A DNA stretch of 64,000 bases from Eukaryota sp. TZLM1-RC. Its lineage: Eukaryota > Protista > Metamonada: BaSk clade. How positions within the stretch are numbered: the first letter of the stretch is position 1; each line of letters opens with the position of its first letter. This document shows, one piece after another, positions 1-53,900 of the stretch. Location of the stretch: assembly GCA_040285825.1 (NCBI GenBank), contig JAUPSS010000007.1, positions 3,140,141 to 3,204,140 of the forward strand, written 5' to 3'. Both the position numbers and the translations under genes were made by a program. The notes under the pieces are model-generated. The model worked only from the letters and a program-made list of their open reading frames with translations. It was not told the origin of the DNA and made no database searches.

Positions 1-3000
1 TTGAATGGTCATTGGTATGATTAGATGAGTTGCATGTAGTCTTTATGTACTAGATGTGATCAACTTGTGATCAAACTTTGTGTGAAATTGTGTGTTAGTA
101 ATGTTGGCTATGTGTTACTTGATCAGTACAAACTCATGATTACATTTTCAAATGATTTTTGTATATATTTGAATTAATTGAGTGTATTAATTTTTTTAAA
201 CATTAAATTGTAAAAAAAGTAAAAAAATCAAAAAAAGTATACAATTGAATGTTGTAAACTAATAAAACAATTGCTGTAAGTGTAAGAGTATCGTTTTTTT
301 GATACGATTTACTGAGAGCTCATATGAAGTTCCTAGTTTCGTATATTGACCAATGGTTGTTTATTACAATCATTGGTCAAATCTTACAAATCCATTTTGG
401 GACAATTAATATAACAATTGTGGTGTTAAAGTCCGTGCTATGGTCATTTGAGTAGTCATTGGTATGATTGGTTGAATGGTCATTGGTATGATTAGATGAG
501 TTGCATGTAGTCTTTATGTACTAGATGTGATCAACTTGTGATCAAACTTTGTGTGAAATTGTGTGTGAGTAATGTTGGCTATGTGTTACTTGATCAGTAC
601 AAACTCATGATTACATTTTTCAAATGATTTTGTATATATTTGAATTAATTGAGTGTATTAATTTTTTTAAACATTAAATTGTAAAAAAAGTAAAAAAATC
701 AAAAAGTATACAATTGAATGTTGTAAACTAATAAAACAATTGCTGTAAGTGTAAGAGTATCGTTTTTGATACGATTTACTGAGAGCTCATATGAAGTTCC
801 TAGTTTCGTATATTGACCAATGGTTGTTTATTACAATCATTGGTCAAATCTTTCAAAAGTCCATTTTGGGACAATTAATATAACAATTGTGGTGTTAAAG
901 TCCGTGCTATGGTCATTTGAGTAGTCATTGGTTTGATTGGTTGAATGGTCATTGGTATGATTAGATGAGTTGCATGTAGTCCTTATGTACTAGATGTGAT
1001 CAACTTGTGATCAAACTTTGTGTGAAATTGTGTGTGAGGTAATGTTGGCTATGTGTTGCTTGATCAGTACAAACTCATGATTACATTTTTCAAATGATTT
1101 TGTATATATTTGAATTAATTGAGTGTATTAATTTTTTTAAACATTAAATTGTAAAAAAAGTAAAAAAATCAAAAGTATACAGATTGAATGTTGTAAACTA
1201 ATAAAACAATTGCTGTAAGTGTAAGAGTATCGTTTTTTTGATACGATTTACTGAGAGCTCATATGAAGTTCCTAGTTTCGTATATTGACCAATGGTTGTT
1301 TATTACAATCATTGGTCAAATCTTAAAATCCATTTTGGGACAATTAATATAACAATTGTGGTGTTAAAGTCCGTGCTATGGTCATTTGAGTAGTCATTGG
1401 TATGATTGGTTGAATGGTCATTGGTATGATTAGATGAGTTGCATGTAGTCTTTATGTACTAGATGTGATCAACTTGTGATCAAACTTTGTGTGAAATTGT
1501 GTGTTAGTAATGTTGGCTATGTGTTACTTGATCAGTACAAACTCATGATTACATTTTCAAATGATTTTTGTATATATTTGAATTAATTGAGTGTATTAAT
1601 TTTTTTAAACATTAAATTGTAAAAAAAGTAAAAAAATCAAAAAAAGTATACAATTGAATGTTGTAAACTAATAAAACAATTGCTGTAAGTGTAAGAGTAT
1701 CGTTTTTTTGATACGATTTACTGAGAGCTCATATGAAGTTCCTAGTTTCGTATATTGACCAATGGTTGTTTATTACAATCATTGGTCAAATCTTTAAAAG
1801 TCCATTTTGGGACAATTAATATAACAATTGTGGTGTTAAAGTCCGTGCTATGGTCATTTGAGTAGTCATTGGTTTGATTGGTTGAATGGTCATTGGTGTG
1901 ATTTAGATTGAGTTGCATGTAGTCTTTATGTACTAGATGTGATCAACTTGTGATCAAACTTTGTGTGAAATTGTGTGTGAGTAATGTTGGCTATGTGTTA
2001 CTTGATCAGTACAAACTCATGATTACATTTTCAAATGATTTTTGTATATATTTGAATTAATTGAGTGTATTAATTTTTTTAAACATTAAATTGTAAAAAA
2101 AGTAAAAAAATCAAAAAAAGTATACAATTGAATGTTGTAAACTAATAAAAACAATTGCTGTAAGTGTAAGAGTATCGTTTTTGATACGATTTACTGAGGC
2201 TCATATGAAGTTCCTAGTTTCGTATATTGACCAATGGTTGTTTATTACAATCATTGGTCAAATCTTTAAAGTCCATTTTGGGACAATTAATATAACAATT
2301 GTGGTGTTAAAGTCCGTGCTATGGTCATTTGAGTAGTCATTGGTATGATTGGTTGAATGGTCATTGGTATGATTAGATGAGTTGCATGTAGTCCTTATGT
2401 ACTAGATGTGATCAACTTGTGATCAAACTTTGTGTGAAATTGTGTGTGAGTAATGTTGGCTATGTGTTACTTGATCAGTACAAACTCATGATTACATTTT
2501 CAAATGATTTTGTATATATTTGAATTAATTGAGTGTATTAATTTTTTTAAACATTAAATTGTAAAAAAAGTAAAAAAATCAAAAAAGTATACAATTGAAT
2601 GTTGTAAACTAATAAAAACAATTGCTGTAAGTGTAAGAGTATCGTTTTTTTGATACGATTTACTGAGGCTCATATGAAGTTCCTAGTTTCGTATATTGAC
2701 CAATGGTTGTTTATTACAATCATTGGTCAAATCTTTAAAGTCCATTTTGGGACAATTAATATAACAATTGTGGTGTTAAAGTCCGTGCTATGGTCATTTG
2801 AGTAGTCATTGGTATGATTGGTTGAATGGTCATTGGTATGATTAGGTGAGTTGCATGTAGTCTTTATGTACTAGATGTGATCAACTTGTGATCAAACTTT
2901 GTGTGAAATTGTGTGTGAGTAATGTTGGCTATGTGTTACTTGATCAGTACAAACTCATGATTACATTTTCAAATGATTTTGTATATATTTGAATTAATTG

Positions 3001-6000
3001 AGTGTATTAATTTTTTTAAACATTAAATTGTAAAAAAATAAAAAATGAAAAAGTATACAATTGAATGTTGTAAACTAATAAAACAATTGCTGTAAGTGTA
3101 AGAGTATCGTTTTTGATACGATTTACTGAGGCTCATATGAAGTTCCTAGTTTCGTATATTGACCAATGGTTGTTTATTACAATCATTGGTCAAATCTTTA
3201 AAGTCCATTTTGGGACAATTAATATAACAATTGTGGTGTTAAAGTCTGTGCTATGGTCATTTGAGTAGTCATTGGTATGATTGGTTGAATGGTCATTGGT
3301 ATGATTAGGTGAGTTGTATGTAGTCCTTATGTACTAGATGTGATCAACTTGTGATCAAACTTTGTGTGAAATTGTGTGTGAGTAATGTTGGCTATGTGTT
3401 ACTTGATCAGTACAAACTCATGATTACATTTTCAATTGATTTTGTATATATTTGAATTAATTGAGTTTATTAATTTTTTTAAACATTAAATTGTAAAAAA
3501 AATAAAAAAATGAAAAAGTATACAATTGAATGTTGTAAACTAATAAAACAATTGCTGTAAGTGTAAGAGTATCGTTTTTTTGATACGATTTACTGAGGCT
3601 CATATGAAGTTCCTAGTTTCGTATATTGACCAATGGTTGTTTATTACAATCATTGGTCAAATCTTTAAAAGTCCATTTTGGGACAATTAATATAACAATT
3701 GTGGTGTTAAAGTCTGTGCTATGGTCATTTGAGTAGTCATTGGTATGATTGGTTGAATGGTCATTGGTATGATTAGGTGAGTTGCATGTAGTCCTTATGT
3801 ACTAGATGTGACCAACTTGTGATCAAACTTTGTGTGAAATTGTGTGTGAGTAATGTTGGCTATGTGTTACTTGATCAGTACAAACTCATGATTACATTTT
3901 CAATTGATTTTGTATATATTTGAATTAATTGAGTTTATTAATTTTTTTAAACATTAAATTGTAAAAAAATAAAAAATGAAAAAGTATACAATTGAATGTT
4001 GTAAACTAATAAAAACAATTGCTGTAAGTGTAAGAGTATCGTTTTTTTGATACGATTTACTGAGGCTCATATGAAGTTCCTAGTTTCGTATATTGACCAA
4101 TGGTTGTTTATTACAATCATTGGTCAAATCTTTAAAAGTCCATTTTGGGACAATTAATATAACAATTGTGGTGTTAAAGTCTGTGCTATGGTCATTTGAG
4201 TAGTCATTGGTATGATTGGTTGAATGGTCATTGGTATGATTAGGTGAGTTGCATGTAGTCCTTATGTACTAGATGTGACCAACTTGTGATCAAACTTTGT
4301 GTGAAATTGTGTGTGAGTAATGTTGGCTATGTGTTACTTGATCAGTACAAACTCATGATTACATTTTCAATTGATTTTGTATATATTTGAATTAATTGAG
4401 TTTATTAATTTTTAAACATTAAATTGTAAAAAAAATAAAAAAATGAAAAAAAGTATACAATTGAATGTTGTAAACTAATAAAAACAATTGCTGTAAGTGT
4501 AAGAGTATCGTTTTTGATACGATTTACTGAGGCTCATATGAAGTTCCTAGTTTCGTATATTGACCAATGGTTGTTTATTACAATCATTGGTCAAATCTTT
4601 AAAGTCCATTTTGGGACAATTAATATAACAATTGTGGTGTTAAAGTCTGTGCTATGGTCATTTGAGTAGTCATTGGTATGATTGGTTGAATGGTCATTGG
4701 TATGATTAGGTGAGTTGTATGTAGTCCTTATGTACTAGATGTGACCAACTTGTGATCAAACTTTGTGTGAAATTGTGTGTGAGTAATGTTGGCTATGTGT
4801 TACTTGATCAGTACAAACTCATGATTACATTTTCAATTGATTTTGTATATATTTGAATTAATTGAGTTTATTAATTTTTAAACATTAAATTGTAAAAAAA
4901 TAAAAAAATGAAAAAAAGTATACAATTGAATGTTGTAAACTAATAAAAACAATTGCTGTAAGTGTAAGAGTATCGTTTTTGATACGATTTACTGAGGCTC
5001 ATATGAAGTTCCTAGTTTTCGTATATTGACCAATGGTTGTTTATTACAATCATTGGTCAAATCTTTAAAGTCCATTTTGGGACAATTAATATAACAATTG
5101 TGGTGTTAAAGTCTGTGCTATGGTCATTTGAGTAGTCATTGGTATGATTGGTTGAATGGTCATTGGTATGATTAGGTGAGTTGCATGTAGTCCTTTATGT
5201 ACTAGATGTGACCAACTTGTGATCAAACTTTGTGTGAAATTGTGTGTGAGTAATGTTGGCTATGTGTTACTTGATCAGTACAAACTCATGATTACATTTT
5301 CAATTGATTTTGTATATATTTGAATTAATTGAGTTTATTAATTTTTAAACATTAAATTGTAAAAAAAATAAAAAAATGAAAAAGTATACAATTGAATGTT
5401 GTAAACTAATAAAACAATTGCTGTAAGTGTAAGAGTATCGTTTTTGATACGATTTACTGAGGCTCATATGAAGTTCCTAGTTTCGTATATTGACCAATGG
5501 TTGTTTATTACAATCATTGGTCAAATCTTTAAAGTCCATTTTGGGACAATTAATATAACAATTGTGGTGTTAAAGTCTGTGCTATGGTCATTTGAGTAGT
5601 CATTGGTATGATTGGTTGAATGGTCATTGGTATGATTAGGTGAGTTGTATGTAGTCCTTATGTACTAGATGTGACCAACTTGTGATCAAACTTTGTGTGA
5701 AATTGTGTGTGAGTAATGTTGGCTATGTGTTACTTGATCAGTACAAACTCATGATTACATTTTCAATTGATTTTGTATATATTTGAATTAATTGAGTTTA
5801 TTAATTTTTAAACATTAAATTGTAAAAAAAATAAAAAAATGAAAAAAAGTATACAATTGAATGTTGTAAACTAATAAAACAATTGCTGTAAGTGTAAGAG
5901 TATCGTTTTTGATACGATTTACTGAGGCTCATATGAAGTTCCTAGTTTCGTATATTGACCAATGGTTGTTTATTACAATCATTGGTCAAATCTTTAAAGT

Positions 6001-9000
6001 CCATTTTGGGACAATTAATATAACAATTGTGGTGTTAAAGTCTGTGCTATGGTCATTTGAGTAGTCATTGGTATGATTGGTTGAATGGTCATTGGTATGA
6101 TTAGGTGAGTTGTATGTAGTCCTTATGTACTAGATGTGACCAACTTGTGATCAAACTTTGTGTGAAATTGTGTGTGAGTAATGTTGGCTATGTGTTACTT
6201 GATCAGTACAAACTCATGATTACATTTTCAATTGATTTTGTATATATTTGAATTAATTGAGTTTATTAATTTTTAAACATTAAATTGTAAAAAAAATAAA
6301 AAAATGAAAAAAAGTATACAATTGAATGTTGTAAACTAATAAAACAATTGCTGTAAGTGTAAGAGTATCGTTTTTGATACGATTTACTGAGGCTCATATG
6401 AAGTTCCTAGTTTCGTATATTGACCAATGGTTGTTTATTACAATCATTGGTCAAATCTTTAAAGTCCATTTTGGGACAATTAATATAACAATTGTGGTGT
6501 TAAAGTCTGTGCTATGGTCATTTGAGTAGTCATTGGTATGATTGGTTGAATGGTCATTGGTATGATTAGGTGAGTTGTATGTAGTCCTTTATGTACTAGA
6601 TGTGACCAACTTGTGATCAAACTTTGTGTGAAATTGTGTGTGAGTAATGTTGGCTATGTGTTACTTGATCAGTACAAACTCATGATTACATTTTCAATTG
6701 ATTTTGTATATATTTGAATTAATTGAGTGTATTAATTTTTAAACATTAAATTGTAAAAAAAATAAAAAATGAAAAAGTATACAATTGAATGTTGTAAACT
6801 AATAAAACAATTGCTGTAAGTGTAAGAGTATCGTTTTGATACGATTTACTGAGGCTCATATGAAGTTCCTAGTTTCGTATATTGACCAATGGTTGTTTAT
6901 TACAATCATTGGTCAAATCTTTAAAGTCCATTTTGGGACAATTAATATAACAATTGTGGTGTTAAAGTCCGTGCTATGGTCATTTGAGTAGTCATTGGTA
7001 TGATTGGTTGAATGGTCATTGGTATGATTAGGTGAGTTGCATGTAGTCCTTTATGTACTAGATGTGACCAACTTGTGATCAAACTTTGTGTGAAATTGTG
7101 TGTGAGTAATGTTGGCTATGTGTTACTTGATCAGTACAAACTCATGATTACATTTTCAATTGATTTTGTATATATTTGAATTAATTGAGTTTATTAATTT
7201 TTAAACATTAAATTGTAAAAAAATAAAAAAATGAAAAAAAGTATACAATTGAATGTTGTAAACTAATAAAACAATTGCTGTAAGTGTAAGAGTATCGTTT
7301 TTGATACGATTTACTGAGGCTCATATGAAGTTCCTAGTTTCGTATATTGACCAATGGTTGTTTATTACAATCATTGGTCAAATCTTTAAAGTCCATTTTG
7401 GGACAATTAATATAACAATTGTGGTGTTAAAGTCTGTGCTATGGTCATTTGAGTAGTCATTGGTATGATTGGTTGAATGGTCATTGGTATGATTAGGTGA
7501 GTTGTATGTAGTCCTTATGTACTAGATGTGACCAACTTGTGATCAAACTTTGTGTGAAATTGTGTGTGAGTAATGTTGGCTATGTGTTACTTGATCAGTA
7601 CAAACTCATGATTACATTTTCAATTGATTTTGTATATATTTGAATTAATTGAGTTTATTAATTTTTAAACATTAAATTGTAAAAAAAATAAAAAAATCGA
7701 AAAAGTATACAATTGAATGTTGTAAACTAATAAAACAATTGCTGTAAGTGTAAGAGTATCGTTTTTGATACGATTTACTGAGGCTCATATGAAGTTCCTA
7801 GTTTCGTATATTGACCAATGGTTGTTTATTACAATCATTGGTCAAATCTTTAAAGTCCATTTTGGGACAATTAATATAACAATTGTGGTGTTAAAGTCTG
7901 TGCTATGGTCATTTGAGTAGTCATTGGTATGATTGGTTGAATGGTCATTGGTATGATTAGGTGAGTTGTATGTAGTCCTTATGTACTAGATGTGATCAAC
8001 TTGTGATCAAACTTTGTGTGAAATTGTGTGTGAGTAATGTTGGCTATGTGTTACTTGATCAGTACAAACTCATGATTACATTTTCAATTGATTTTGTATA
8101 TATTTGAATTAATTGAGTTTATTAATTTTTAAACATTAAATTGTAAAAAAATAAAAAATGAAAAAGTATACAATTGAATGTTGTAAACTAATAAAACAAT
8201 TGCTGTAAGTGTAAGAGTATCGTTTTTGATACGATTTACTGAGGCTCATATGAAGTTCCTAGTTTCGTATATTGACCAATGGTTGTTTATTACAATCATT
8301 GGTCAAATCTTTAAAGTCCATTTTGGGACAATTAATATAACAATTGTGGTGTTAAAGTCCGTGCTATGGTCATTTGAGTAGTCATTGGTATGATTGGTTG
8401 AATGGTCATTGGTATGATTAGGTGAGTTGCATGTAGTCCTTATGTACTAGATGTGACCAACTTGTGATCAAACTTTGTGTGAAATTGTGTGTGAGTAATG
8501 TTGGCTATGTGTTACTTGATCAGTACAAACTCATGATTACATTTTCAATTGATTTTGTATATATTTGAATTAATTGAGTGTATTAATTTTTAAACATTAA
8601 ATTGTAAAAAAAGTAAAAAATCAAAAAGTATACAATTGAATGTTGTAAACTAATAAAACAATTGCTGTAAGTGTAAGAGTATCGTTTTTGATACGATTTA
8701 CTGAGGCTCATATGAAGTTCCTAGTTTCGTATATTGACCAATGGTTGTTTATTACAATCATTGGTCAAATCTTTAAAGTCCATTTTGGGACAATTAATAT
8801 AACAATTGTGGTGTTAAAGTCTGTGCTATGGTCATTTGAGTAGTCATTGGTATGATTGGTTGAATGGTCATTGGTATGATTAGGTGAGTTGTATGTAGTC
8901 CTTATGTACTAGATGTGACCAACTTGTGATCAAACTTTGTGTGAAATTGTGTGTGAGTAATGTTGGCTATGTGTTACTTGATCAGTACAAACTCATGATT

Positions 9001-9862
9001 ACATTTTCAATTGATTTTGTATATATTTGAATTAATTGAGTTTATTAATTTTTAAACATTAAATTGTAAAAAAAATAAAAAATGAAAAAGTATACAATTG
9101 AATGTTGTAAACTAATAAAACAATTGCTGTAAGTGTAAGAGTATCGTTTTTGATACGATTTACTGAGGCTCATATGAAGTTCCTAGTTTCGTATATTGAC
9201 CAATGGTTGTTTATTACAATCATTGGTCAAATCTTTAAAGTCCATTTTGGGACAATTAATATAACAATTGTGGTGTTAAAGTCTGTGCTATGGTCATTTG
9301 AGTAGTCATTGGTATGATTGGTTGAATGGTCATTGGTATGATTAGGTGAGTTGTATGTAGTCCTTATGTACTAGATGTGACCAACTTGTGATCAAACTTT
9401 GTGTGAAATTGTGTGTGAGTAATGTTGGCTATGTGTTACTTGATCAGTACAAACTCATGATTACATTTTCAATTGATTTTGTATATATTTGAATTAATTG
9501 AGTTTATTAATTTTTAAACATTAAATTGTAAAAAAATAAAAAATGAAAAAGTATACAATTGAATGTTGTAAACTAATAAAACAATTGCTGTAAGTGTAAG
9601 AGTATCGTTTTTGATACGATTTACTGAGGCTCATATGAAGTTCCTAGTTTCGTATATTGACCAATGGTTGTTTATTACAATCATTGGTCAAATCTTTAAA
9701 GTCCATTTTGGGACAATTAATATAACAATTGTGGTGTTAAAGTCTGTGCTATGGTCATTTGAGTAGTCATTGGTATGATTGGTTGAATGGTCATTGGTAT
9801 GATTAGGTGAGTTGTATGTAGTCCTTATGTACTAGATGTGACCAACTAGTGATCAAACTTTG
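1..9862 (+). repeat. Tandem satellite block 1, ~21 units of ~460-470 bp; unit = 28S rRNA 3' terminus plus putative 3' ETS/spacer
   Basis: The unit start TTGCTGTAAGTGTAAGAGTATCG recurs at 271, 740, 1210, 1680 and onward. The array stops mid-unit at ...GATCAAACTTTG (9862). Confidence 0.97.
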
Positions 9863-9957
9863 ACCCAAGCCAACGTTATGGTCTTGGGTTTGGGTATCAA
9901 CAGGGCCCTCTTGCAACTAATCCTGATTCAGATAATTTACATTCTGTTCCTTCTTCA

Positions 9958-12576
9958 ATGACTCCTGATAATGATACTATTTCTAATATGACTGACCCTT
10001 CCACACATTCTTTTGATTGTGATGACTCCACTCACCCTCCTACCACAGCTCACAATCTCGCTCTTTCTGAACGCCCCATGGAAACTATAGACAATGCTCC
10101 TGATTCTCCCGTCTGCATTGTACCTGAAGAAACAACTGCTTTGAATACAACTATGAATGCCGATACTAATGCTAGTCCTTTAAAGATTTACACAGATGGT
10201 TCTTTCCTGAAAACAAAGGGTAAATGTGGTTTTGCAGTCTATTATGTATATAATAGCGAAACATACTCATTTTATGGGCCTTTACATCAAAACACTCACA
10301 ATTATGGAGAGTTTGAAGCTGTAAGAGTTGCTCTCTGTTCACTACTTTTACTGGAAAATTGTCCCCAAGAAATTGTGATATATTCTGATTCTAATCTTTT
10401 GGTTCGCGCTTTAAACAAAAAGGCAGTTATAAGGCAAAAGAAGCTAAAGTATTTACTGAGCACCATTAAATCCTTGATGAGTGGGTGGAAGCTGAACAAA
10501 TTTACTTTTAATTTTGAAAAAATTGCTGCTCATGTAGGTCATCACGGGAATCAAATGGCGGACAAGCTGGCCAAACTGGGGGCAGAAGGAAACACAAGTG
10601 AAAACATGAAACTACTTACCCCCTCAAAGTTAAGCCAACAAAGACCACCCGAACCGATAGCCACTATGAAGCCCATGACCTTTCCACCAGTTGAAAACGT
10701 TACTGACAATTGTTGTAAAAATGTATGTCCATTTTGCGATGATAATTTTGAAAGATCACGGGACCTTTGCTCTCACCTCAAAGATAATCACCCCTCTCTC
10801 ACCCAAGATGAACTGTTACTTCATCAATTCTGTAAATGCCCATGCTGCCAACAGATATTTACAACAAGGGGATTTGATATTCATTGGAATTCCCAGCATC
10901 AAGGCCCCCAGGAACAACTGGTTCCAGAAATATCAAGTAACACAATGGTTGAGCTCACCCGACGTTTCGGATCGCTGAATTACACAAGGCTTAAAAGCAA
11001 AGTGTCTTGGAGATATGCCATTGATTATATCTCAAATAATGTTACAATTTCGCAAGAACAAAAGTGCCGTTATCTATTGCTGCTCCCACTAGTTTGCCTG
11101 AAGATCAACAACGGTTCTTGCATCGTAAATTTGATTCAATTCATGTCGAATATCCAATCGATTAACACAGGATCGGACTCATCACAAGTGATTGACTCCA
11201 TGCTTTCACATGTAGCTCCAAAGCATACCTTGAAAAACCCTGGTGGAATAAACAAGAAGAGAGTTCAAGAACTAATAAGGGACAATGAACTGTCGAGAGC
11301 CATGAATATGGTGACACGAACCAATGCACAATTATCTCTTAGCCAATCTGAAGTGAAAAAAGAACTTGATCGATTACATCCCAAAGATGATAACTTACAA
11401 AATTATGAGTCTCCACCTGAAGTTCTTACTAATTCCATGACATTGTCTGTTCAAGAAGTGGAGGACGCAATTTTAGAAATGCCAGCTTCAGAGGGTGGAG
11501 TATTTCACTGGCATGGTAAACTATTGAAAGAATGCCTGAATAACAATATAATAAGATGTATTCATTTTTTGGCCAACTCTTTCTATAATGGTACAGTAAG
11601 TGAATGCCTGAAATTTGCTGTGACCTCAAGCCGTTTAATCGCATTGCCAAAAACCAGTAACAAATTACGTCCCATCGCCATTGGAGAGCTTTTTTATAGA
11701 GTCATCGCCAGAATCATTCTGAACAAATGCAATACAGAGTATTTAAGTTCAAGCAACCAATTTGGAGTCAAAGTATCAGGCGGAGCCGAATGTATTATTC
11801 ACGCCATTAGACAAAACCTAGGATCCAAATTCGAAAGGTGTATCAAATTTGACATAGCAAATGCGTTCAATGAATTGAATCGAGGAAAATTGTTGAGCGC
11901 TTTAGAAAAATATTGCCCTCGTTTAGTGCCATTCTACAAGACTAGCTACTTGTCCCCATCAAGTCTGTTTTATGGAGAAGATGAAGTAATTTCTGAAAAA
12001 GGAGTCAAGCAAGGTGACCCACTTGGTCCTTTGTTATTTGCTACATCATTAGTTGAACCAATCAACATTCTTCAAACACTTTTTCCGGATTCTATATTTC
12101 TTGCTTATCTTGATGATATCTTTGTCCTCACAAATGTACAAAGTTCTCAGCAAATTATAGAAGAAATGACCGATTCGCTTCAATTGCTTGACCTCACTGT
12201 TAATACTAATAAGACATCCACGTTATCAAATGAAGACACTTTTACTGTGTTAGGTAGTTTTGTCGGTCCTGGAGCAGAAGAAATGCTGTACAATTCAAGC
12301 CCAAACGAATTTAGAAACTGCATAAACAACATCTCTGAACTAACTATCCAAAATCAACTACTATTGATAAGAACTTGCTTGAACACTCGACTCTCGTTTA
12401 CGGCTAGGACTCATAAACCGACAACGTCCACTAAAGCTCTCGCAGCATGCCACGATCTTTTAGTTGAATTCATTACGAACACTTTAGGTCAATTACCCAA
12501 ATACAAAGAACTAGTTTCATTTCCAGTAGCTAGTTTTTGGAGGCCTAGGGCTCAAAAATTACTGCGAAATTGCTGA
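9958..12576 (+). CDS. Retrotransposon polyprotein, N-terminal part: RNase HI, two C2H2 zinc fingers, reverse transcriptase
   Basis: RNase H motifs IYTDGS / NYGEFEA / IYSDS / AHVGHHGNQMADKLA (nt ~10180-10585). Zinc fingers CPFC..HLKDNH and CPCC..HWNSQH. RT motifs RPIAIGE, QFGV..GGAE, FDIANAFN, GVKQGDPLGPLLF, YLDD. The frame is open upstream to the satellite junction, so the true start may be missing. The stop at 12576 follows a frameshift in the T5 run at 12534-12538. Confidence 0.92.
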   Translation: MTPDNDTISNMTDPSTHSFDCDDSTHPPTTAHNLALSERPMETIDNAPDSPVCIVPEETTALNTTMNADTNASPLKIYTDGSFLKTKGKCGFAVYYVYNSETYSFYGPLHQNTHNYGEFEAVRVALCSLLLLENCPQEIVIYSDSNLLVRALNKKAVIRQKKLKYLLSTIKSLMSGWKLNKFTFNFEKIAAHVGHHGNQMADKLAKLGAEGNTSENMKLLTPSKLSQQRPPEPIATMKPMTFPPVENVTDNCCKNVCPFCDDNFERSRDLCSHLKDNHPSLTQDELLLHQFCKCPCCQQIFTTRGFDIHWNSQHQGPQEQLVPEISSNTMVELTRRFGSLNYTRLKSKVSWRYAIDYISNNVTISQEQKCRYLLLLPLVCLKINNGSCIVNLIQFMSNIQSINTGSDSSQVIDSMLSHVAPKHTLKNPGGINKKRVQELIRDNELSRAMNMVTRTNAQLSLSQSEVKKELDRLHPKDDNLQNYESPPEVLTNSMTLSVQEVEDAILEMPASEGGVFHWHGKLLKECLNNNIIRCIHFLANSFYNGTVSECLKFAVTSSRLIALPKTSNKLRPIAIGELFYRVIARIILNKCNTEYLSSSNQFGVKVSGGAECIIHAIRQNLGSKFERCIKFDIANAFNELNRGKLLSALEKYCPRLVPFYKTSYLSPSSLFYGEDEVISEKGVKQGDPLGPLLFATSLVEPINILQTLFPDSIFLAYLDDIFVLTNVQSSQQIIEEMTDSLQLLDLTVNTNKTSTLSNEDTFTVLGSFVGPGAEEMLYNSSPNEFRNCINNISELTIQNQLLLIRTCLNTRLSFTARTHKPTTSTKALAACHDLLVEFITNTLGQLPKYKELVSFPVASFWRPRAQKLLRNC

Positions 12577-13426
12577 TTTATGTTATCACGCCTCTGTAGC
12601 ATCAGCAAACATAACCATGAATTCCATGAAATTGGACAAGTTGTTGGACCAATATGACGTACTGTTATCCACAACTTTTGTCAAAACAGAAATTTCTGAG
12701 TTCAATAACGGCAAGAGACTTCAATCCCTTCTCACAAACCAATTTTACAAGAAGGCACAAAAGGAGTTTCTTGTCCAACTAAGGACCCCAGACACGCATA
12801 GTGAGATTTCCTCAACAACAAAAAGTTAACGATTACACCCTCAATTGTAAACCCCTAGCAGGAACTATACTGACTTCATTACCTGTAACAGCAGACTTTA
12901 CTTTGCCAGATCATCTAATGAGATATATACTGAAATGCCGACTTTTGATGCACAGACATCAAACACACCATTGTGCATTATGTGGTCACTGTGCAGACTC
13001 CTTATACCATTCAGCCAACTGTGAGCAATTTTCTAGAATGAGGATTGACAAACATGATTCTATTCTCAAAACAATTGCTGAGAAAACAGGTCTTCAAACA
13101 GAACAAAAGCTTTTTACAGGAAGAATTGATTTGCTAAATACAAACGAAACTCATGGTTACGATTTAACAATGGTAGGTGGGTACCACTCGTGCATTGAAG
13201 AAGCCATCGGAAGAAGCAAGAATGAGAAGATAGAGAAATACAGTGGATGGGTGGACAATGTTACTCCTTTGGTTTTTATCCATCTGGTGGACTAGACGCT
13301 TCATTCATTCAATTTCTAAGAAAATACGAACTTAAAAATCTGGGTAAATGGGTTGCAATGGAAATAATCAGAAAGGGATATATGATGAACTGTGTTTACC
13401 ATCGAATGCTCACCCAGATAGTATAA
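12539..13426 (+). CDS. Frameshifted C-terminal continuation of the same polyprotein: RT thumb, CCHC knuckle, restriction-like endonuclease
   Basis: From 12539 the shifted frame reads GGLGLKNY.. and is in frame with ORF 12617-12829. ORF 12801-13295 has CALCGHCADSLYHSANC, RIDKHD, GRIDLL, YDLTMV and K..KY. One extra T in the run at 13273-13277 gives PLVFYPSGGLD...QIV* ending at 13426. Confidence 0.8.
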
Positions 13427-13460
13427 TTCGTAGCAATAAGCAGCATCTGTGATTTAATAA

Positions 13461-13860
13461 ACTGAATAATTGTCATCCTAATAGTAAAGCAACCCAGTAC
13501 GAGAGGAACCGTTGTTTCGCATAATTGGTATTTACGCTTATCTGAAAAGATATTGGTGTGAAGCTAACATGCGTTGGATTATAGCTGAACGCCTCTAAGC
13601 TAGTATCCAACCTAGAAAGGATGATATATTGACCTGCAAATTTAATCGATAAAGATTAGGATTGTGTTTACACAGTCCCAATATCTCATCAGTGGGATTG
13701 ATGTTTAGTCTAAGTACTATTCATTGATCATTGAAACTATGAAGATTCGCAGGATCATGAAACCTTGGCAGACGACCAAGATACGGAACTCATTGCTGTA
13801 AGTGTAAGAGTATCGTTTTGATACGATTTACTGAGGCTCATATGAAGTTCCTAGTTTCGT
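13461..13860 (+). rRNA. 28S (LSU) rRNA 3' fragment (domain VI) downstream of the retrotransposon
   Basis: Sarcin-ricin loop AGTACGAGAGGAAC at 13496-13509 and CTGAACGCCTCTAAG. Near-identical to 18207-18608. The 3' end is approximate. Confidence 0.93.
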
Positions 13861-15623
13861 ATATTGACCAATGGTTGTTTATTACAATCATTGGTCAAAT
13901 CTTTAAAGTCCATTTTGGGACAATTAATATAACAATTGTGGTGTTAAAGTCCGTGCTATGGTCATTTGAGTAGTCATTGGTATGATTGGTTGAATGGTCA
14001 TTGGTATGATTAGATGAGTTGCATGTAGTCCTTTATGTACTAGATGTGATCAACTTGTGATCAAACTTTGTGTGAAATTGTGTGTGAGTAATGTTGGCTA
14101 TGTGTTACTTGATCAGTACAAACTCATGATTACATTTTCAAATGATTTTGTATATATTTGAATTAATTGAGTGTATTAATTTTTAAACATTAAATTGTAA
14201 AAAAGTAAAAAATCAAAAGTATACAATTGAATGTTGTAAACTAATAAAACAATTGCTGTAAGTGTAAGAGTATCGTTTTGATACGATTTACTGAGGCTCA
14301 TATGAAGTTCCTAGTTTCGTATATTGACCAATGGTTGTTTATTACAATCATTGGTCAAATCTTAAAGTCCATTTTGGGACAATTAATATAACAATTGTGG
14401 TGTTAAAGTCCGTGCTATGGTCATTTGAGTAGTCATTGGTATGATTGGTTGAATGGTCATTGGTATGATTAGATGAGTTGCATGTAGTCCTTTATGTACT
14501 AGATGTGATCAACTTGTGATCAAACTTTGTGTGAAATTGTGTGTGAGTAATGTTGGCTATGTGTTACTTGATCAGTACAAACTCATGATTACATTTTCAA
14601 ATGATTTTGTATATATTTGAATTAATTGAGTGTATTAATTTTTAAACATTAAATTGTAAAAAAGTAAAAATCAAAAGTATACAATTGAATGTTGTAAACT
14701 AATAAAACAATTGCTGTAAGTGTAAGAGTATCGTTTTGATACGATTTACTGAGGCTCATATGAAGTTCCTAGTTTCGTATATTGACCAATGGTTGTTTAT
14801 TACAATCATTGGTCAAATCTTAAAGTCCATTTTGGGACAATTAATATAACAATTGTGGTGTTAAAGTCCGTGCTATGGTCATTTGATTAGTCATTGGTAT
14901 GATTGGTTGAATGGTCATTGGTATGATTAGATGAGTTGCATGTAGTCTTTATGTACTAGATGTGATCAACTTGTGATCAAACTTTGTGTGAAATTGTGTG
15001 TTAGTAATGTTGGCTATGTGTTACTTGATCAGTACAAACTCATGATTACATTTTCAAATGATTTTGTATATATTTGAATTAATTGAGTGTATTAATTTTT
15101 AAACATTCAATTGTAAAAAAAGTAAAAAATCAAAAAGTATACAATTGAATGTTGTAAACTAATAAAACAATTGCTGTAAGTGTAAGAGTATCGTTTTTGA
15201 TACGATTTACTGAGGCTCATATGAAGTTCCTAGTTTCGTATATTGACCAATGGTTGTTTATTACAATCATTGGTCAAATCTTTAAAGTCCATTTTGGGAC
15301 AATTAATATAACAATTGTGGTGTTAAAGTCCGTGCTATGGTCATTTGATTAGTCATTGGTTTGATTGGTTGAATGGTCATTGGTATGATTAGATGAGTTG
15401 CATGTAGTCCTTATGTACTAGATGTGATCAACTTGTGATCAAACTTTGTGTGAAATTGTGTGTTAGTAATGTTGGCTATGTGTTACTTGATCAGTACAAA
15501 CTCATGATTACATTTTCAAATGATTTTGTATATATTTGAATTAATTGAGTGTATTAATTTTTAAACATTAAATTGTAAAAAAAGTAAAAAATCAAAAAGT
15601 ATACAATTGAATGTTGTAAACTA
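13793..15623 (+). repeat. Tandem satellite block 2, ~4 units
   Basis: Units start at 13793, 14253 and onward (460 bp). The first unit is continuous with 28S. The block ends at ...GTTGTAAACTA (15623). Confidence 0.96.
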
Positions 15624-15652
15624 GCTAAATATAAAAAGGAGACCGATAGTTC

Positions 15653-15683
<31 letters not shown>

Positions 15684-16525
15684 TCTGAAGAGAGAGTTAA
15701 AAGTACCTGAAATCACTGAAAGGATAAGCGATTGGAACTTGATATTGATAGCTTCGGCTGTCTTGCGTTGGAGTGATTTTGAAAATTGAGTGATTGTGGG
15801 GAAGGTAGCTATAATGAACTTCGGTTTATTGTAGTGTTATAGCCTCATAAATTGTTCTTTTTTAAGAATCAGGAATACGGTTTTACCGAGACTCCAACAT
15901 AAAAGGTTCAATTGTCCCGTCTTGAAACACGGACCAAGGAGTGTATCTCTTCTGCAAGTCGTAGGGTGTAAAAACCTGAAGGCGAAATGAAAGTAATTTT
16001 ATGAGGGGAAGTTTCGACTGCACCCTCAACCAGTCCTTGCAAAGGGATCTGAGTATGAGCAGAATGGATACGACCCGAAAGCCGCTGAACTATGCCTGAA
16101 TAGGATGAAGCCAGGGGAAACTCTGGTGGAAGTCCGTAGCGATGTTGACGTGCAAATCACTCGTCAAATTTGGGTATAGGGGCGAAAGACTCATCGAAGC
16201 GGCTAGTAGCTGGTTACGTTCGAAGTTTCCCCCAGGATAGCTGGAGCTTGTTTTAGTTTTGTCCGGTAAAGCTAATGATTAGAGGTACTAGGGACGCAAT
16301 GTCCTTAGCCTATTCTCAAACTTTAAATGGGCAAGATTTGTGATGATACTTAAGTGATCGTTGCAATTGAATAATAGCTCTAAGTGGGCCATTTTTGGTA
16401 AGCAGAACTGGCGATGTGGGATGCTCCAAAAGACATGTTAAGGTGCCTAAGTGTGCACTCATTTAGACCCCAGAAAAGGTGTTGGTTGATATTGACAGCA
16501 GGACGGTGGCCATGGAAGTCGGAAT

Positions 16526-16559
<34 letters not shown>

Positions 16560-17469
16560 TCAACTAGCCCTGAAAATTGATGGCGCTAAAGTGTGCCACC
16601 TATACATGTCCATTAATTCATTTTATGAGTTAATGTGTAGAACGTCGTGGGGGTTGCGTAGAAGGTTCATTGTGAAATGGACTGGAGCAGCCTCTAGTGC
16701 AGATCTTGGTGGTAGTAGCAAATAAACAAGTTGGAATCTTGTTGACCGAAGTGGAGTAGGGTTCCATGGTAAAGGTATTCTGCCATGGGTTAGTCGGTCC
16801 TAAGGCACAGGTTAACTCTTTGAGAGGGGGCTTTTATAGCTCCGTCCTGTCGAAAGGGAAGCAGGTTAATATTCCTGCACCAACAGTGGGTGTTCGTGGT
16901 AACACAATCGAATCTAGAGATGTCGGGGAGGATCCTGGGAAGAGTTATCTTTTCTTATTAACTGTCTATTGTCCATGGAATCTGTTTAACAGGAGAAGTG
17001 GATATAAGATAGGAAGAGCATTACGTTTTTGTAATGTCCGGTGTATTCTCAACGGCCCTTGAAAATCTAGAGGAGTAATCACTTCATTGTTGTCCGTACC
17101 GATAACCGCATCAGGTCTCCAAGGTGTGTAGCCTCTGGTCTATAGAAGAACGTAGGTAAGGGAAGTCGGCAAAATAGATCCGTAACTTCGGGATAAGGAT
17201 TGGCTCTAGGGGCCTTGTGTAAGAGCCCTAGTGGTGACGCACTGAGCGTTGATGTGATTGGCAACAATTGCGTTGATGCGAGGTGTTGATCCATTGGGAT
17301 TACTTTTATGCAATTAAAGGTCAACCTAGAACTGTAACGGACAAAGGGAACCCGACTGTTTAATCGAAACAAAGCTTTCTGATGGCCGGAAACGGTGTTG
17401 ACAGAAAGTGATTTCTGCTCAGTGCTCTGAATGTCATTGTGAAGAGATTCAATCAAGCACGGGTAAACA

Positions 17470-17514
<45 letters not shown>

Positions 17515-17515
17515 C

Positions 17516-17548
<33 letters not shown>

Positions 17549-17570
17549 GTTCCCACTGTCCCTACCTACC

Positions 17571-17606
<36 letters not shown>

Positions 17607-18010
17607 TAATTCAGCGGGGAAAGAAAGACCCTGTTGAGCTTGACTCTAGTCTGATATTGTGAACCGATTCAGGAGGTGTAGCGTACAGGGGAGTAGATTT
17701 ATCTACGCCAATGAAACACCCTGACTCTTGACATTGGTTTGCTAACTTAATTAATCCGAAACAGGTTTCCTGTTTCAAGATTTAAGTGTCTTCGGATACG
17801 ATCGGATTTAAGGACATTGTCAGATGGGGAGTTTGGCTGGGGCGGCACATCTCCAAAATAATAACGGAGGTGTCCTAAGGTGAGCTCAATGAGAACAGAA
17901 ATCTCATGTAGAACATAAGGGTAAAAGCTCACTTGATTTTGATTTTCAGTATGAATACAAACCAAGAAATTGTGGCCTAACGATCCTTTAACTATAAGAA
18001 ACTTTTAGCT

Positions 18011-18053
<43 letters not shown>

Positions 18054-18155
18054 AGCCAAGCGTTCATAGCGACGTTGCTTTTTGATTCTTCGATGTCGGC
18101 TCTTCCTATCATTGAGAAGCAGAATTCTCAAAGCGTTGGATTGTTCACCCATTAA

Positions 18156-18201
<46 letters not shown>

Positions 18202-18608
18202 ACCCTACTGAATAATTGTCATCCTAATAGTAAAAGCAACCCAGTACGAGAGGAACCGTTGTTTCGCATAATTGGTATTTACGCTTATCTGAAAAGATAT
18301 TGGTGTGAAGCTAACATGCGTTGGATTATAGCTGAACGCCTCTAAGCTAGTATCCAACCTAGAAAGGATGATATATTGACCTGCAAATTTAATCGATAAA
18401 GATTAGGATTGTGTTTACACAGTCCCAATATCTCATCAGTGGGATTGATGTTTAGTCTAAGTACTATTCATTGATCATTGAAACTATGAAGATTCGCAGG
18501 ATCATGAAACCTTGGCAGACGACCAAGATACGGAACTCATTGCTGTAAGTGTAAGAGTATCGTTTTTGATACGATTTACTGAGGCTCATATGAAGTTCCT
18601 AGTTTCGT
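15624..18608 (+). rRNA. 28S (LSU) rRNA, 5'-truncated copy lacking roughly the first 300+ nt; no retroelement insertion
   Basis: Conserved eukaryotic LSU motifs: GAGACCGATAG..CAAGTACCGTGAGGGAAAG, CCCGTCTTGAAACACGGACCAAGGAG, CAGATCTTGGTGGTAGTAGCAAA, CTCTCTTAAGGTAGCCAAATGCC, GGGATAACTGGCTTGTGGCAGCC, GGTTTAGACCGTCGTGAGACAGG, and the SRL at 18244-18257. Probably non-functional in this position. Confidence 0.96.
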
Positions 18609-50932: not shown

Positions 50933-53900
50933 CCAAAGAATTCATTCACTTGAACTACTTGACAAGGCATTATTAGTAACTGATACTAGCGGTGCTGTAC
51001 ATAAGGTTTTGTTACAAAACAATTTACCATTTGATTACGAAACTCTTTTTGTTTATTATTCAGGTCCTATTATTGGTGGAAGCTGGTTAAACTCCTCTCA
51101 TGTCCTTTGTTATGGATTTGATGGGAAACTCATCATTTTTGATTGTCGTGATTACTGTAAGCCTACAACCATCCTTTCTGAACAATTTCATGGTAACGGG
51201 TCTTGTCTTTATTCATTTGCTGAACACTTTTCTATCCCACATCTTGCTTTAATTGGGACCACTAATGGTATTGTTCGGTTGGTTGGCGCTTCTCTAGGTG
51301 GATTCATTTTATTTTCTGCACTCAGGCCTTGTAAAGCAGCTATTACCGACATTTGTGTCAATCACTTTGATGTCTCTTCCACTCTCAGTGATGTCTATGT
51401 CGTCACTGTATCGAAAGATGGTGTTTTGTGGAAGTACTCCCTTGATATTCCTAATAATGTACTCACACCTGTTTGTATGGTGTCATTTAGCACCTTTTCA
51501 ATTAATATCACCGAGCCCCCGAAATTAGCTGCTATTAAGAATGGTTTTCTGGTCACGGTCGGTGCTGATTTTTTAATTAAAGTTTTTTGGGATGGATTTA
51601 TTCCCCCAACAACTGGGTTGGAAGGTAGTCTTAAGTTTGATATTGTTCATTTACCTAATGAGTTAGCTGGATTTTGTTTACCACCGCCCAAGCAACGTGA
51701 TTTGCTCAAGAAACGCCGAGACTTACAAGCTGAACGTTCAAAATTAATAGAAGATATGAGCCACAATTTGTCAAATGAAGGGTATTCTAAGGAAGAAATT
51801 GATGCCAAAATTGATGAGTTGGAACCTTTGGCTCTACCTAATGATGGTATCAAACACTTTGATAAGTTTCAAATTTGTGATGTCTATTTCAGCACAATTA
51901 AAGATCAAATGTTTATTACTGGTTTGGGTAATCTGACTGGAACTATTCATTGTCTAAAACTAAATGGAAATGTTTTTACAATAGTAAAGTCTTTTTTCAC
52001 CCCCAACCAAGTCCCAATTTGCCCTGGTTCCATTCATTGTTCTGACACTGTTCTTACTGCTAGTACAATTGATGGTAATATTCATTATTGGAGCTTTGAA
52101 AAATCGTTTGATGACGAATGTAGTATTGGACTGGCTTATCCACTAAGAGTATCTCGCCAATCTCACATTGAAAGTTCTTTAAGTTCTTCTAAAAATTCGT
52201 TAACCAGGGTTTCCCAATGTTCTAACTTTTTAATTTCTCTGGGTCATGATGGCTCTGTCGTTTTTTACTCTACTGATGAGACCTCTCATCCACCGTTTGA
52301 ACCCTTAAATATGCTAAGTGATACTCTTGGTGTCTACGATTTGGATGAAGCTGCTTTGACCATTGAAGAAACTTTACAACAAAAAAGTTTATCTCAACGT
52401 GAGGAATTGGCAAGTAAACGGCAATCTATAATGAGAGCAAAAATTAACCAATTAAAAATGGAATTCAGTAGATTACTCAAAAAAAATTACCGTAAATCTA
52501 CAGAAAATCAGCTGAGTAGAAATGAATTTTATTTTGACCAGGATTTGTTTGAATTTGTTGAAAACGATTTACTGAACAGAAAACAAAGTCTTGTTAGTGA
52601 AAAACAGGATGAAATTATTTCAACTGAACAACAAGTTTCAAAGTTGAAACATTTTCTTCAGTTTTACATTGATAATTTAAAAGTTTCTGTGTTTTCGTTT
52701 GACCAATCTAGTTCGGTTTCCACAATCTCTTTGTCTCAATCATTTGATTACGGTTTCCTTTGTCATTTTGAAAACTCAATGATGTCTTCTCTAGATTTTG
52801 ATGTGGTTACTGTTCATTTTCAACATTCACAACCTCAGGAAAATGATACTGAGTGTTCAATTGTTATAAATGAGCCAGCCAGTAGCTCTTCTTCTGTAGC
52901 ACATCGACGTTTACCTTCGAAAGTAACTTCATTAGGTTCACCTGTTGCCAATTCTATTTCTACTGAACACACAACACACGAACGCTTAGCTGCAAGGAAG
53001 TTCCGAATGCAACAACGGCAAGAAGAGTGGTCGCAACTTTTGAAATTAAAGCCCGCTAATGATTGCAATGATCCAGCAGACATGGAGCTTATCAGCAAAG
53101 CTAAAAACGATATCGGAGTTTTTTCCTTAAAAGAAAGTAATGGTTTTGTGGTCCCTAATGAACTACGTATCGACACGCAGACAAAACAGCTTGAGTTGGC
53201 GGTGGCTTTGAGAACCTATCTTATTATTGTAAAAAACTTCAACAAGAAGGTAAGTCAACTTCGAGATGAAAAGATTGCTATAGTTAGGGGCATCAAACAC
53301 CGTAGAAACCAAGTCAAAAGTTTACTGTCAATGATTGATGAATCTATTGACGATCTGATTGATGTTCCAGTATTAACCATGGAAGAACAGCCTGAGCTTT
53401 TGTTCAAGATAAATGATCAAATGTTGCATAAATTCAAGAAGTTTAAGGAGTTCAGCAAAGAGAGTCAAGAATCTAGTGGCTTTGGAGGTTTAAAAAAGGT
53501 AGAAGAAGGTCAAGACACTTTAGAGGATGTTTTATTCAATTTACACGACTCTAGTGATGAAGAGATTACCCTAGAAAATGACAAATGTCGTTATTCTGGC
53601 TTGGGCTTAAATAAGTTTAGAAGTCAACTCATTAAGAAAAAGTACCTAGATAAAATTCATCAAATTAATGCAAAAGATGAACAAATCCGTGCTGCTTTCT
53701 TAAACAAATTTAATTCTCTTTGTACCGAAAGAATTGAGAAGTGTTATCTTATTGCTCAGTTAAAATTAAGGCTAACTATTCTTGGCCAGGAATTTTCTCT
53801 TGTAAAGAATTTTGAAGATCAAGAATTTAAAATACGAGAGAAAATTTCTGTCAAGCTCGAGCAGCAATCGAGAATTCAACAAGATGTGGCAAAGTTTGAA

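Follow-up and report, generated by a model that had tools for sequence, protein, structure and literature searches.

The 64,000-nt stretch of DNA analysed here (the window) comes from the free-living protist Skoliomonas litria TZLM1-RC, whose genome assembly is of the Nanopore R9.4 type with Illumina polishing (PMC11316075). Short-read contigs of the same source sample were available for comparison; a second sample with another organism label (X3) holds low-depth pieces with an identity of 99% or more. The stretch was found in no RNA run. The part of the window of interest is rDNA, interrupted by a retroelement, and contains the following features, all on the forward strand.

1..9862, forward strand: 462-bp rDNA spacer satellite, ~21 units (TRF)
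9863..13460, forward strand: lineage-1 non-LTR retrotransposon of the restriction-like endonuclease (RLE) type, 3598 bp, probably specific to 28S 2901/2902 (copy comparison)
9958..12576, forward strand: first segment of the reading frame, 872 aa, ATG at 9958 (ORF list, three-frame translation)
10180..10602, forward strand: RNase H of the bacterial RNase HI type (Pfam PF00075, E = 4.6e-19; PDB RNase HI matches)
10726..10791 and 10831..10899, forward strand: two C2H2-type zinc fingers (motifs, weak Pfam zinc-finger matches)
11245..12450, forward strand: reverse transcriptase (RT) with N-terminal extension and thumb (Pfam PF00078, E = 1.3e-20)
12534, forward strand: apparent frameshift 1, one additional T in a T run relative to L001 and L002 (three-copy alignment)
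12820, forward strand: apparent frameshift 2, one additional A in an A run (three-copy alignment)
12966..13241, forward strand: CCHC motif and restriction-like endonuclease core (motif conservation)
13272, forward strand: apparent frameshift 3, one T fewer in a T run (three-copy alignment)
13427..13460, forward strand: 3′ UTR, 34 nt, ending TTTAATAA (stop codon at 13424–13426)
13461..13860, forward strand: 3′ fragment of the 28S rRNA gene (28S 2902–3302), the downstream half of the target
13792..15622, forward strand: four spacer satellite units (TRF, sequence comparison)
15623..18608, forward strand: 5′-truncated 28S copy (28S 320–3302) with the uninterrupted target and the R2 motif

The satellite borders the element upstream and stops at 9862, at a unit phase of ~279 (phases were derived by BLAST against the unit starting at 18539); similarity to other copies begins at 9860–9863, which defines the 5′ limit. 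Downstream, each of the four satellite units opens with 67 nt that equal the final 67 nt of the 28S. The 28S copy beyond them, which carries the empty site, is itself incomplete: it begins at 28S position 320, directly 3′ of the satellite, and neither 5.8S nor 18S is found upstream of window 15623.

The element is 99.8% identical to L001 9903–13502 and 99.5% identical to L002 11560–15158. Relative to the full-length L002 copy it lacks ~1.07 kb at the 5′ end, and its reading frame is already open at the satellite junction, upstream of the ATG at 9958. The segment 9958–12576 corresponds to residues 1–860 of P0001, an intact protein of 1155 aa. The three 1-nt homopolymer frameshifts that break the frame are absent from the short-read contigs, which at 12534 have only the shorter, in-frame version; they are therefore probably Nanopore assembly errors. 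For the same reason we rejected, as unproven, the reading of the copy as a dead pseudogene. The 3′ UTR has no poly(A).

The element ends in ...TTTAATAA at 13460 (the sequence before this position reads ...GATTTAATAA) and the final 401 nt of the 28S follow from 13461. This flank matches 28S 2902–3302 of the full gene in L001 in 400 of 402 alignment columns, and Rfam assigns 13471–13858 to LSU model positions 3006–3399. On L002, which contains the same piece of 28S, Rfam gave no match, an outcome we attribute to filtering. The window has a single match to the empty site, TACCCT/ACTGAATAATTG (18201–18218; 0 expected by chance), which places the insertion point at 18206/18207 of the uninterrupted 28S, ...TTTACCCT/ACTGAAT. 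Immediately 5′ of the junction the element has A where the 28S has T, which fixes the boundary on that side without ambiguity. The target motif of R2, TTAAGG/TAGCCAAATGCC, is also intact and also occurs once (17491–17508), with the R2 site at 17496/17497 (E. coli 1928/1929; the R1 site is at +74). A first-pass annotation of this DNA had proposed the 3′ junction with 28S, the empty site at 18206/18207 and a distance of ~710 nt downstream from the intact R2 site. The first two are borne out by the sequence match, the single occurrence of the motif and the short-read contigs, and the motif positions give exactly 710 nt, with the element's site the more 3′ of the two (28S 2901/2902). Two short-read contigs of the source sample span the 3′ junction (X1 record 6, 11299–13490; X2 record 14, 9884–13482), and the short-read contigs end or branch precisely at 9863 and 13461.

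The element encodes a single protein with, in order, an RNase H domain, two C2H2 fingers, RT, a CCHC motif and a restriction-like endonuclease, and its domain set and catalytic motifs are intact. The N-terminal domain resembles RNase HI both by sequence (PDB) and by fold (E. coli RNase HI), and all its motifs are kept (YTDGS, EFEAV, YSDS, HGNQMAD). The C2H2 fingers, modelled at a pLDDT of 89–96, are presumed to form a DNA-binding module. The Pfam core of the RT covers 11647–12255, with YLDD inside 12103–12123; across 53 relatives, YLDD is conserved along with other RT residues, and alignments A2 and A3 show invariant RT residues. The CCHC motif lies inside 12966–13022 and is followed by the endonuclease residues KHD, E, RID (13119–13136), D (in 13158–13175) and K (in 13227–13241). 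In P0001 numbering, C1005, C1008, H1017, C1021, H1032, E1048, D1057 and D1068 are at least 90% conserved in the 53 relatives, and K1090 is invariant in alignment A2. This pattern agrees with the published REL consensus (PMC12857005), and the endonuclease is predicted to be of the PD-(D/E)xK restriction-like type. A Pfam search of the protein gave no Exo_endo_phos (APE) match and detected no Myb domain. An AlphaFold2 model (pLDDT 85.4, pTM 0.75) has an R2-like predicted fold: the top seven Foldseek matches are all R2 proteins (E = 3e-21 to 7e-16), the best of them, 9nl3, 8gh6, 9nl2 and 9dou, at E ∼ 1e-21 over 990–1150 aligned columns, whereas LINE-1 ORF2p matches more weakly (E = 1e-12).

Copies with the same X/ACTGA junction were found in S. 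litria (the window, L001, L002, L004 and L006, with ACTG alone in L007) and in Skoliomonas sp. GEM-RC1 (L003). Lineage 1 has three (window 13460/1, L001 13502/3, L002 15158/9), lineage 2 has L004 24011/2, L006 13921/2 and 21275/6 and a fourth copy in L007, and the GEM-RC1 lineage has L003 13959/60. Because L002 and L004 are overlapping parts of one contig, the lineage-1 copy with its junction at L002 15158/9 appears again as L004 3151/2. Segmental duplication clearly accounts for some copies; the two in L006 share an identical flank within a 7.35-kb tandem module. The L007 copy keeps only ACTG of the 28S before another element begins, and the last element bases and first target bases thus cannot be separated with certainty. 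The proteins of lineages 1 and 2 (P0001 and P0205) are 38% identical over 1155 aa, and the GEM-RC1 protein is 42–46% identical. The 28S flank in GEM-RC1 matches the 28S of that species at 394 of 394 positions, compared with 314 of 403 for S. litria 28S. At the 3′ end, the final 8 nt of lineage 1 are common to lineage 2, whereas the GEM-RC1 lineage ends in CTATAAAA; when the terminal 80 nt of each of the three lineages were folded and compared with shuffled sequences, z lay between −0.6 and +0.7, with no stable or shared RNA structure.

The first-pass annotation had suggested a new rDNA-specific RLE family at a non-R2 28S site, with the caveat that a single copy is no proof of specificity. The suggestion is upheld by the recurrence of this junction across three lineages and two species, and the caveat can be lifted, as lineages only 38–46% identical in protein keep the same junction nucleotide. 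The 3′ flanks of the other copies, once tabulated, are not diverse; even L007, which has no long 28S flank, keeps ACTG. Full-length copies with a 5′ flank of ...TTTACCCT had also been expected, but no copy has one.

Seven copies with identical 3′ junctions have at least five different 5′ ends and no terminal repeats, features typical of target-primed reverse transcription. Five truncation points or flanks were distinguished: satellite phases 279, ∼ 393, 446 and 90, and a P0157-type fragment. The L002 copy is flanked upstream by another element, and the GEM-RC1 copy by spacer sequence that in a normal unit lies 907 nt upstream of the 18S start. The 28S sequence ...ACCCT is absent upstream of every copy, the flanks being satellite, another element or spacer. 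The 5′ half of the target is missing in all copies, which therefore show no clean filled site and no readable target site duplication or deletion. Two independent full-length 5′ ends (L002 ∼ 10494, L006 9301) start with T runs of ∼ 21 and ∼ 5–7, followed by the same CCCTGCAACTCACG; runs of unequal length are as expected from untemplated tailing of completed cDNA. The differing 5′ ends point to separate events. An Rfam scan of L006 9100–10500 for a self-cleaving 5′ ribozyme, as in R2, returned only chance-level matches, the best being CPEB3 (14.4 bits, E = 1.8), located 155 nt into the element.

In an RT tree built without R2 or named CRE reference sequences, the six rows joined at 28S 2901/2902 form one clade (SH-aLRT 99–100), whose sister is the P0157 lineage, joined to 18S. 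Three lineages at one site together with an 18S sister provide a small natural series on changes in target specificity. As far as seen, the family is confined to Skoliomonas (Metamonada), and no description of it was found in the literature searched. The nearest relatives outside it are ∼ 25–30% identical, and their short contigs (L008, L009) have no rRNA genes or informative flanks that would reveal their targets. Sequence searches found unnamed relatives at E = 1e-46 and the R2 proteins of the PDB at only E = 1e-6, over the RT core alone; in sequence, R2 proteins of known structure are no more than distant relatives, in line with the earlier proposal.

R2 is the closest match in architecture. 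Both have one ORF with N-terminal zinc fingers, RT, CCHC and a C-terminal restriction-like endonuclease, R2 proteins are the best structural match, and both show an exact 3′ junction in conserved 28S, variable 5′ truncation and several diverged lineages per site. In contrast to R2, which inserts at TTAAGG/TAGCC in animals, the element sits 710 nt further 3′, in a metamonad; beyond the marginal sequence similarity, it carries an additional N-terminal RNase H, has no Myb domain detected by Pfam and a 3′ UTR of just 34–52 nt, and the 28S junction on the upstream side is intact in none of its copies. With the CRE group (CRE1/2, SLACS, CZAR; MoTeR, Cnl1, FoTeR) it shares the RLE type, the single large ORF and site specificity, and its pattern C-X2-C-X8-H-X3-C-X9-KHD...E...RID...D fits the REL consensus published for CRE/SLACS/MoTeR. 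The named relatives closest to the Skoliomonas clade are fungal (Kwoniella, Aureobasidium, Fusarium), and RLE elements from fungi have been reported to cluster with CRE/SLACS (PMC12857005); an Atlas neighbour cluster is mostly Euglenozoa. The Skoliomonas element differs in its target, 28S rather than spliced-leader genes or telomeres, in its RNase H domain and in the low identity to its nearest outside relatives. On this indirect evidence we consider the term ‘CRE-like’ plausible.

Oomycete Utopia sets a precedent among RLE elements for an RNase H located before the RT, a layout that was called ‘unique’ to it (PMC4640811). The domain is bacterial-RNase-HI-like here, whereas that of Utopia is described as archaeal/plant-like, and the 28S target differs from the U2 snRNA gene of Utopia and the spliced-leader genes of NeSL-type elements. 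P0199, another relative with RNase H, falls outside the Skoliomonas clade in the RT tree, and the domain was thus probably gained independently. Anopheles RT1/RT2 belong to the R1 clade and have an APE-type endonuclease, unlike the Skoliomonas element with its C-terminal RLE and no APE domain. Their insertion site is presumably in 28S ∼ 630 nt 3′ of the R1 site, in roughly the same part of domain V. Site-specific RLE retrotransposons are the model for target-primed reverse transcription (TPRT) and the basis of R2-derived gene-insertion tools. To these the family adds a precisely defined new target adjoining the peptidyl-transferase centre, among the most conserved 28S stretches, a deep-branching protist host far outside animals and an RLE element with built-in RNase H.

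We conclude that 9863–13460 is likely a 5′-truncated copy of a site-specific non-LTR retrotransposon that uses R2-like TPRT at 28S with imprecise 5′ joining. Within this, targeting of a new 28S site is well supported, because the same junction recurs in three lineages, two species and one clade. By analogy with R2, we infer that the protein recognizes conserved 28S around ...GTTAGTTTTACCCT/ACTGA and that its endonuclease introduces a nick into the bottom strand, opposite 28S 2901/2902. The freed 3′ end would prime reverse transcription from the short, non-polyadenylated 3′ end of the element RNA, and the built-in RNase H could then strip the RNA template. The cDNA end, full-length or truncated, would be joined imprecisely to DNA kilobases upstream, mostly spacer satellite, with the consequence that the 18S-5.8S-28S(1–2901) portion of the unit would be lost. 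The steady loss of upstream rDNA raises the question of how second-strand steps proceed in such elements, and of how dispersed, low-copy rDNA is shaped.

A stricter version, possible but doubtful, makes this loss obligatory: only the bottom strand would be nicked, A-tailed cDNA would be joined kilobases upstream and each insertion would delete the promoter-proximal 18S-5.8S-28S. Such ‘unit-killing’ integration may lie behind the element-free truncated units (window 15623, L001 15296). If true, it would be a mode of rDNA parasitism unlike R2, and a route to orphan 5′-truncated rDNA modules.

The junction could instead be cargo, in which case the mobile unit would comprise the element together with the 401-nt 28S tail and the spacer, taken along by 3′ read-through, and would enter the satellite by homology. 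Satellite is indeed upstream of most S. litria copies and 28S of none, and the tail always continues in phase into satellite. However, the L003 stretch has no satellite array, yet shows the same junction in a normal spacer-5S-18S context; in both species the tail shows 100% identity with the 28S of the host, where cargo should have diverged with the element; and the upstream satellite phases are scattered, with another element (L002) or spacer (GEM-RC1) in place of satellite. We regard this as distinctly unlikely.

Nor do we favour a single ancient 28S insertion that spread and diverged solely by unequal crossing-over and segmental duplication, with no targeting today. The shared flanks of both L006 copies in their tandem module, the 99.5–99.8% identity of the lineage-1 copies and the satellite-rich rDNA surroundings of every copy would fit it. 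Intact catalytic motifs and long ORFs in lineages 38–46% identical in protein require selection through retrotransposition, however, and in each species the flanking 28S is still identical to that of the resident gene despite the divergence of the elements. Since 5′ truncation points and flanks vary and the T tails of the full-length copies differ, this reading is very improbable.

A chimera of the repeat-rich Nanopore assembly, at the junction or over the entire module, deserves almost no credence: the R9.4 data and the three homopolymer indels unsupported by short-read contigs suggest that the assembly errs, but short-read contigs bridge the 3′ junction, which is also present on four contigs of S. 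litria and in the assembly of a second species.

The retrotransposon at window 9863-13460 encodes an 872-aa ORF that is 100% identical to KAL0204770.1 ('Eukaryota sp. TZLM1-RC', GCA_040285825.1); the contig that carries the window, JAUPSS010000007.1, is 3.2 Mb long. From its strain code, we read TZLM1-RC as Skoliomonas litria, a metamonad that is free-living and anaerobic. The S. litria assembly was built from Nanopore R9.4 reads with Illumina polishing, and the strain code is absent from the paper describing it (PMC11316075). The window is laid out as follows (RLE, restriction-like endonuclease).

1-9862: 462-bp satellite
9863-13460, + strand: RLE element
13461-13860: final 401 nt of 28S
between this 28S 3' fragment and the 28S copy at 15623: satellite, four units
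15623-18608: 28S copy starting at 28S position 320, without 5.8S or 18S upstream
after the 28S copy: satellite, about 70 further units
51009-55064, + strand: intron-less host ORF (1351 aa) between two rDNA spacer satellite blocks
56652-57694, - strand: degenerate element of a different RLE family, the surviving ORF comprising the RLE part only
from there to the window end: satellite

The first 67 nt of every satellite unit are the last 67 nt of 28S. Judged by its sequence, the host ORF product is probably cilia-associated-like, with WD repeats and a coiled coil. The minus-strand ORF has 55% identity to the N-terminal part of P0196, a related gene model.

The element/28S junction and the empty site described in the first-pass annotation are both real. 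The element terminates in ...GATTTAATAA at 13460, and from 13461 onwards 400 of 402 alignment columns match the full 28S of L001, another S. litria locus. Uninterrupted TACCCT/ACTGAATAATTG occurs once in the window, which places the empty site at 18206/18207, 710 nt past the R2 motif TTAAGG/TAGCCAAATGCC (also a single occurrence, 17496/17497). The R2 site equals E. coli 1928/1929, while that of the element is presumably close to E. coli 23S 2613/2614. Short-read contigs from the source sample run across the junction, and their branch points fall precisely on 9863 and 13461; the junction is therefore not an artefact of long-read assembly. The 401-nt 28S fragment scores 223 bits with Rfam in the window and in L001; a scan at the Rfam gathering threshold gave no hit on locus L002, although L002 15159-15559 is the same fragment. 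The empty site itself (18195-18206) reads GTTAGTTTACCCT, with three T where all other copies have four, a homopolymer difference that is possibly an assembly error.

Further loci were fetched via related proteins; wherever 28S 2902-3021 had a match, the adjoining upstream DNA was inspected. Three diverged lineages are joined to 28S at the same nucleotide, 2901/2902 (X/ACTGA).

Lineage 1: the window, L001 and L002 (the L002 copy is the same DNA as L004 3151/2)
Lineage 2: L004 24011/2; L006 13921/2 and 21275/6
Skoliomonas sp. GEM-RC1 lineage: L003 13959/60, the element ending in CTATAAAA

Lineages 1 and 2 share 38% protein identity, and their 3' UTRs differ save for the last 8 nt. The GEM-RC1 flank matches 28S of its own species at 394 of 394 positions and S. 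litria 28S at 78%; the flank thus follows the host rather than the element. The six rows with this 28S junction fall into a single clade in RT trees (SH-aLRT 99-100). Diverged lineages that keep intact motifs and share one target nucleotide are the pattern known for R2. Because the same holds here, in two species, the sequences are strong evidence for enzyme-directed specificity for 28S 2901/2902, and the proposal of a new 28S-site-specific RLE family, made from a single copy, was right. In L007 (14034-19413), a further lineage-2 copy ends in TTTAATAA followed by ACTG only, where another element begins; from there, ORFs of about 217 aa with a zinc finger and RLE, without RT, are arrayed in tandem.

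The sister of the 28S-site clade in the RT trees is an RLE lineage of S. litria represented by proteins P0157 and P0007. In two loci its 3' terminus abuts 18S at 1209/1210 (GEM-RC1 numbering), and the lineage is probably an 18S-specific family. Its loci, and a neighbouring insertion, are listed here.

L004 10001-14366: P0157/P0007 lineage
L005 10001-14369: P0157/P0007 lineage, with 28S:661 of the preceding unit as upstream flank
L005 18253-19181, - strand: 5'-truncated RLE element of a different family that interrupts 28S; 14-bp target-site duplication (28S 2877-2890); end 11 nt before the 2901/2902 site

Measured against the full-length copies (L002 about 10494-15158; L006 9301-13921), about 1.07 kb is missing from the 5' end of the window copy. 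The missing segment contains the 5' UTR together with an N-terminal region, which in lineage 2 has an extra finger pair (residues 26-87 of P0205). The satellite/element joint at 9862/9863 is blunt. Relative to L001, three 1-nt homopolymer changes break the frame, at 12534, 12820 and 13272. Since the assembly is derived from Nanopore R9.4 reads and the in-frame version carries all the depth in the source-sample short-read contigs (which drop rare variants), we consider these breaks likely to be assembly errors. Even if they are, the copy is truncated at its 5' side within the long reading frame.

The anatomy of the protein was read from the intact lineage-1 product of L001, P0001 (1155 aa).

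1-69: disordered
75-215: RNase H, all acidic motifs present
257-278 and 292-314: two C2H2 fingers
about 430-850: RT (Pfam core 564-766; YLDD 717-720)
between RT and CCHC motif: alpha-helical linker
C1005, C1008, H1017, C1021: CCHC motif
K-H1032-D, E1048, R-I-D1057, D1068, K1090: nuclease core

The CCHC and nuclease pattern agrees with the REL (restriction-like endonuclease) consensus published for CRE, SLACS and MoTeR (PMC12857005). An AlphaFold2 model built from 53 relatives is confident (pLDDT 85.4, pTM 0.75). Its top PDB fold matches are R2 proteins initiating TPRT (9nl3, 8gh6, 9nl2 and 9dou; E about 1e-21, 990-1150 aligned columns), ranked above LINE-1 ORF2p, group II intron RTs and Prp8; by sequence, the solved R2 proteins reach E 1e-6 only. 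The N-terminal domain of the model matches E. coli RNase HI by fold. Together, these matches indicate that P0001 is, as modelled, an R2 architecture with RNase H added.

In a full HMMER scan, close relatives came from Skoliomonas only; next in rank were unnamed environmental proteins (identity about 25-30%, with E 1e-46 to 1e-49). The few named relatives are all fungal (Kwoniella, Aureobasidium, Fusarium), and because the fungal RLE elements MoTeR, Cnl1 and FoTeR reportedly cluster with SLACS, CRE and CZAR (PMC12857005), a 'CRE-like' affinity is plausible. The single published precedent for RNase H upstream of RT is oomycete Utopia (PMC4640811). Pfam detects no RNase H in the 18S-joined sister lineage, and P0199, which also bears RNase H, falls outside the Skoliomonas clade in the RT tree; the RNase H of the 28S-site clade thus looks like a separate gain. 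The S. litria genome paper mentions neither retrotransposons nor rDNA (PMC11316075), and we found no description of Skoliomonas 28S-site elements in the searchable literature. The element is of a known kind, the R2-like rDNA-specific retrotransposons; new are its 28S site, its host lineage, its RNase H and the fact that upstream rDNA is consistently lost.

Regarding this loss, the first-pass annotation had suggested a search for copies with 28S (...TTTTACCCT) as 5' flank. None of the copies in the fetched loci has such a flank, and no copy examined, in the window or the fetched loci, has any 28S upstream of the element. The 5' flanks are as follows (phase, position within the 462-bp unit).

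Window copy: satellite, phase 279
L001 copy: satellite, phase about 393
L004 copy: satellite, phase 446
L006 copies (two, a tandem duplicate): satellite, phase 90
L002 copy: fragment of a P0157-type element
GEM-RC1 copy: spacer, 907 nt upstream of the expected 18S start

The stretch missing from the element-bearing unit of GEM-RC1 starts 907 nt upstream of 18S and runs to 28S:2901. The rDNA spacer of this species includes a 5S gene (L003 6306-6425 and 17250-17369).

Two independent full-length copies start at the same element nucleotide (CCCTGCAACTCACG), with a T run directly before it of about 21 nt in one (L002 10483-10503) and about 5-7 nt in the other (L006 about 9296-9302). The T runs suggest untemplated A-tailing of finished cDNA, and the 5' joints of full-length copies therefore probably arose at insertion rather than by later random deletion. 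We favour a mechanism in which top-strand cleavage would fail or be absent and a distant upstream end would then be captured, with loss of the upstream unit. The first 420 bp show 94-98% nucleotide identity between lineages with 38% protein identity; 5' regions alike to this degree pair L001 9537-9960 with L006 9995-10409, and L002 10498-11304 with L006 9291-10100. Lineages therefore exchange their 5' regions, and the 5' ends of the 28S-site elements are mosaic or recombinant.

Element-free rDNA units are likewise 5'-truncated and abut satellite at odd phases, with a shared 3' end and varying 5' extent, a pattern as in the element-bearing modules.

Window 15623: element-free unit starting at 28S position 320
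L001 15296: element-free unit starting at about 18S position 1541
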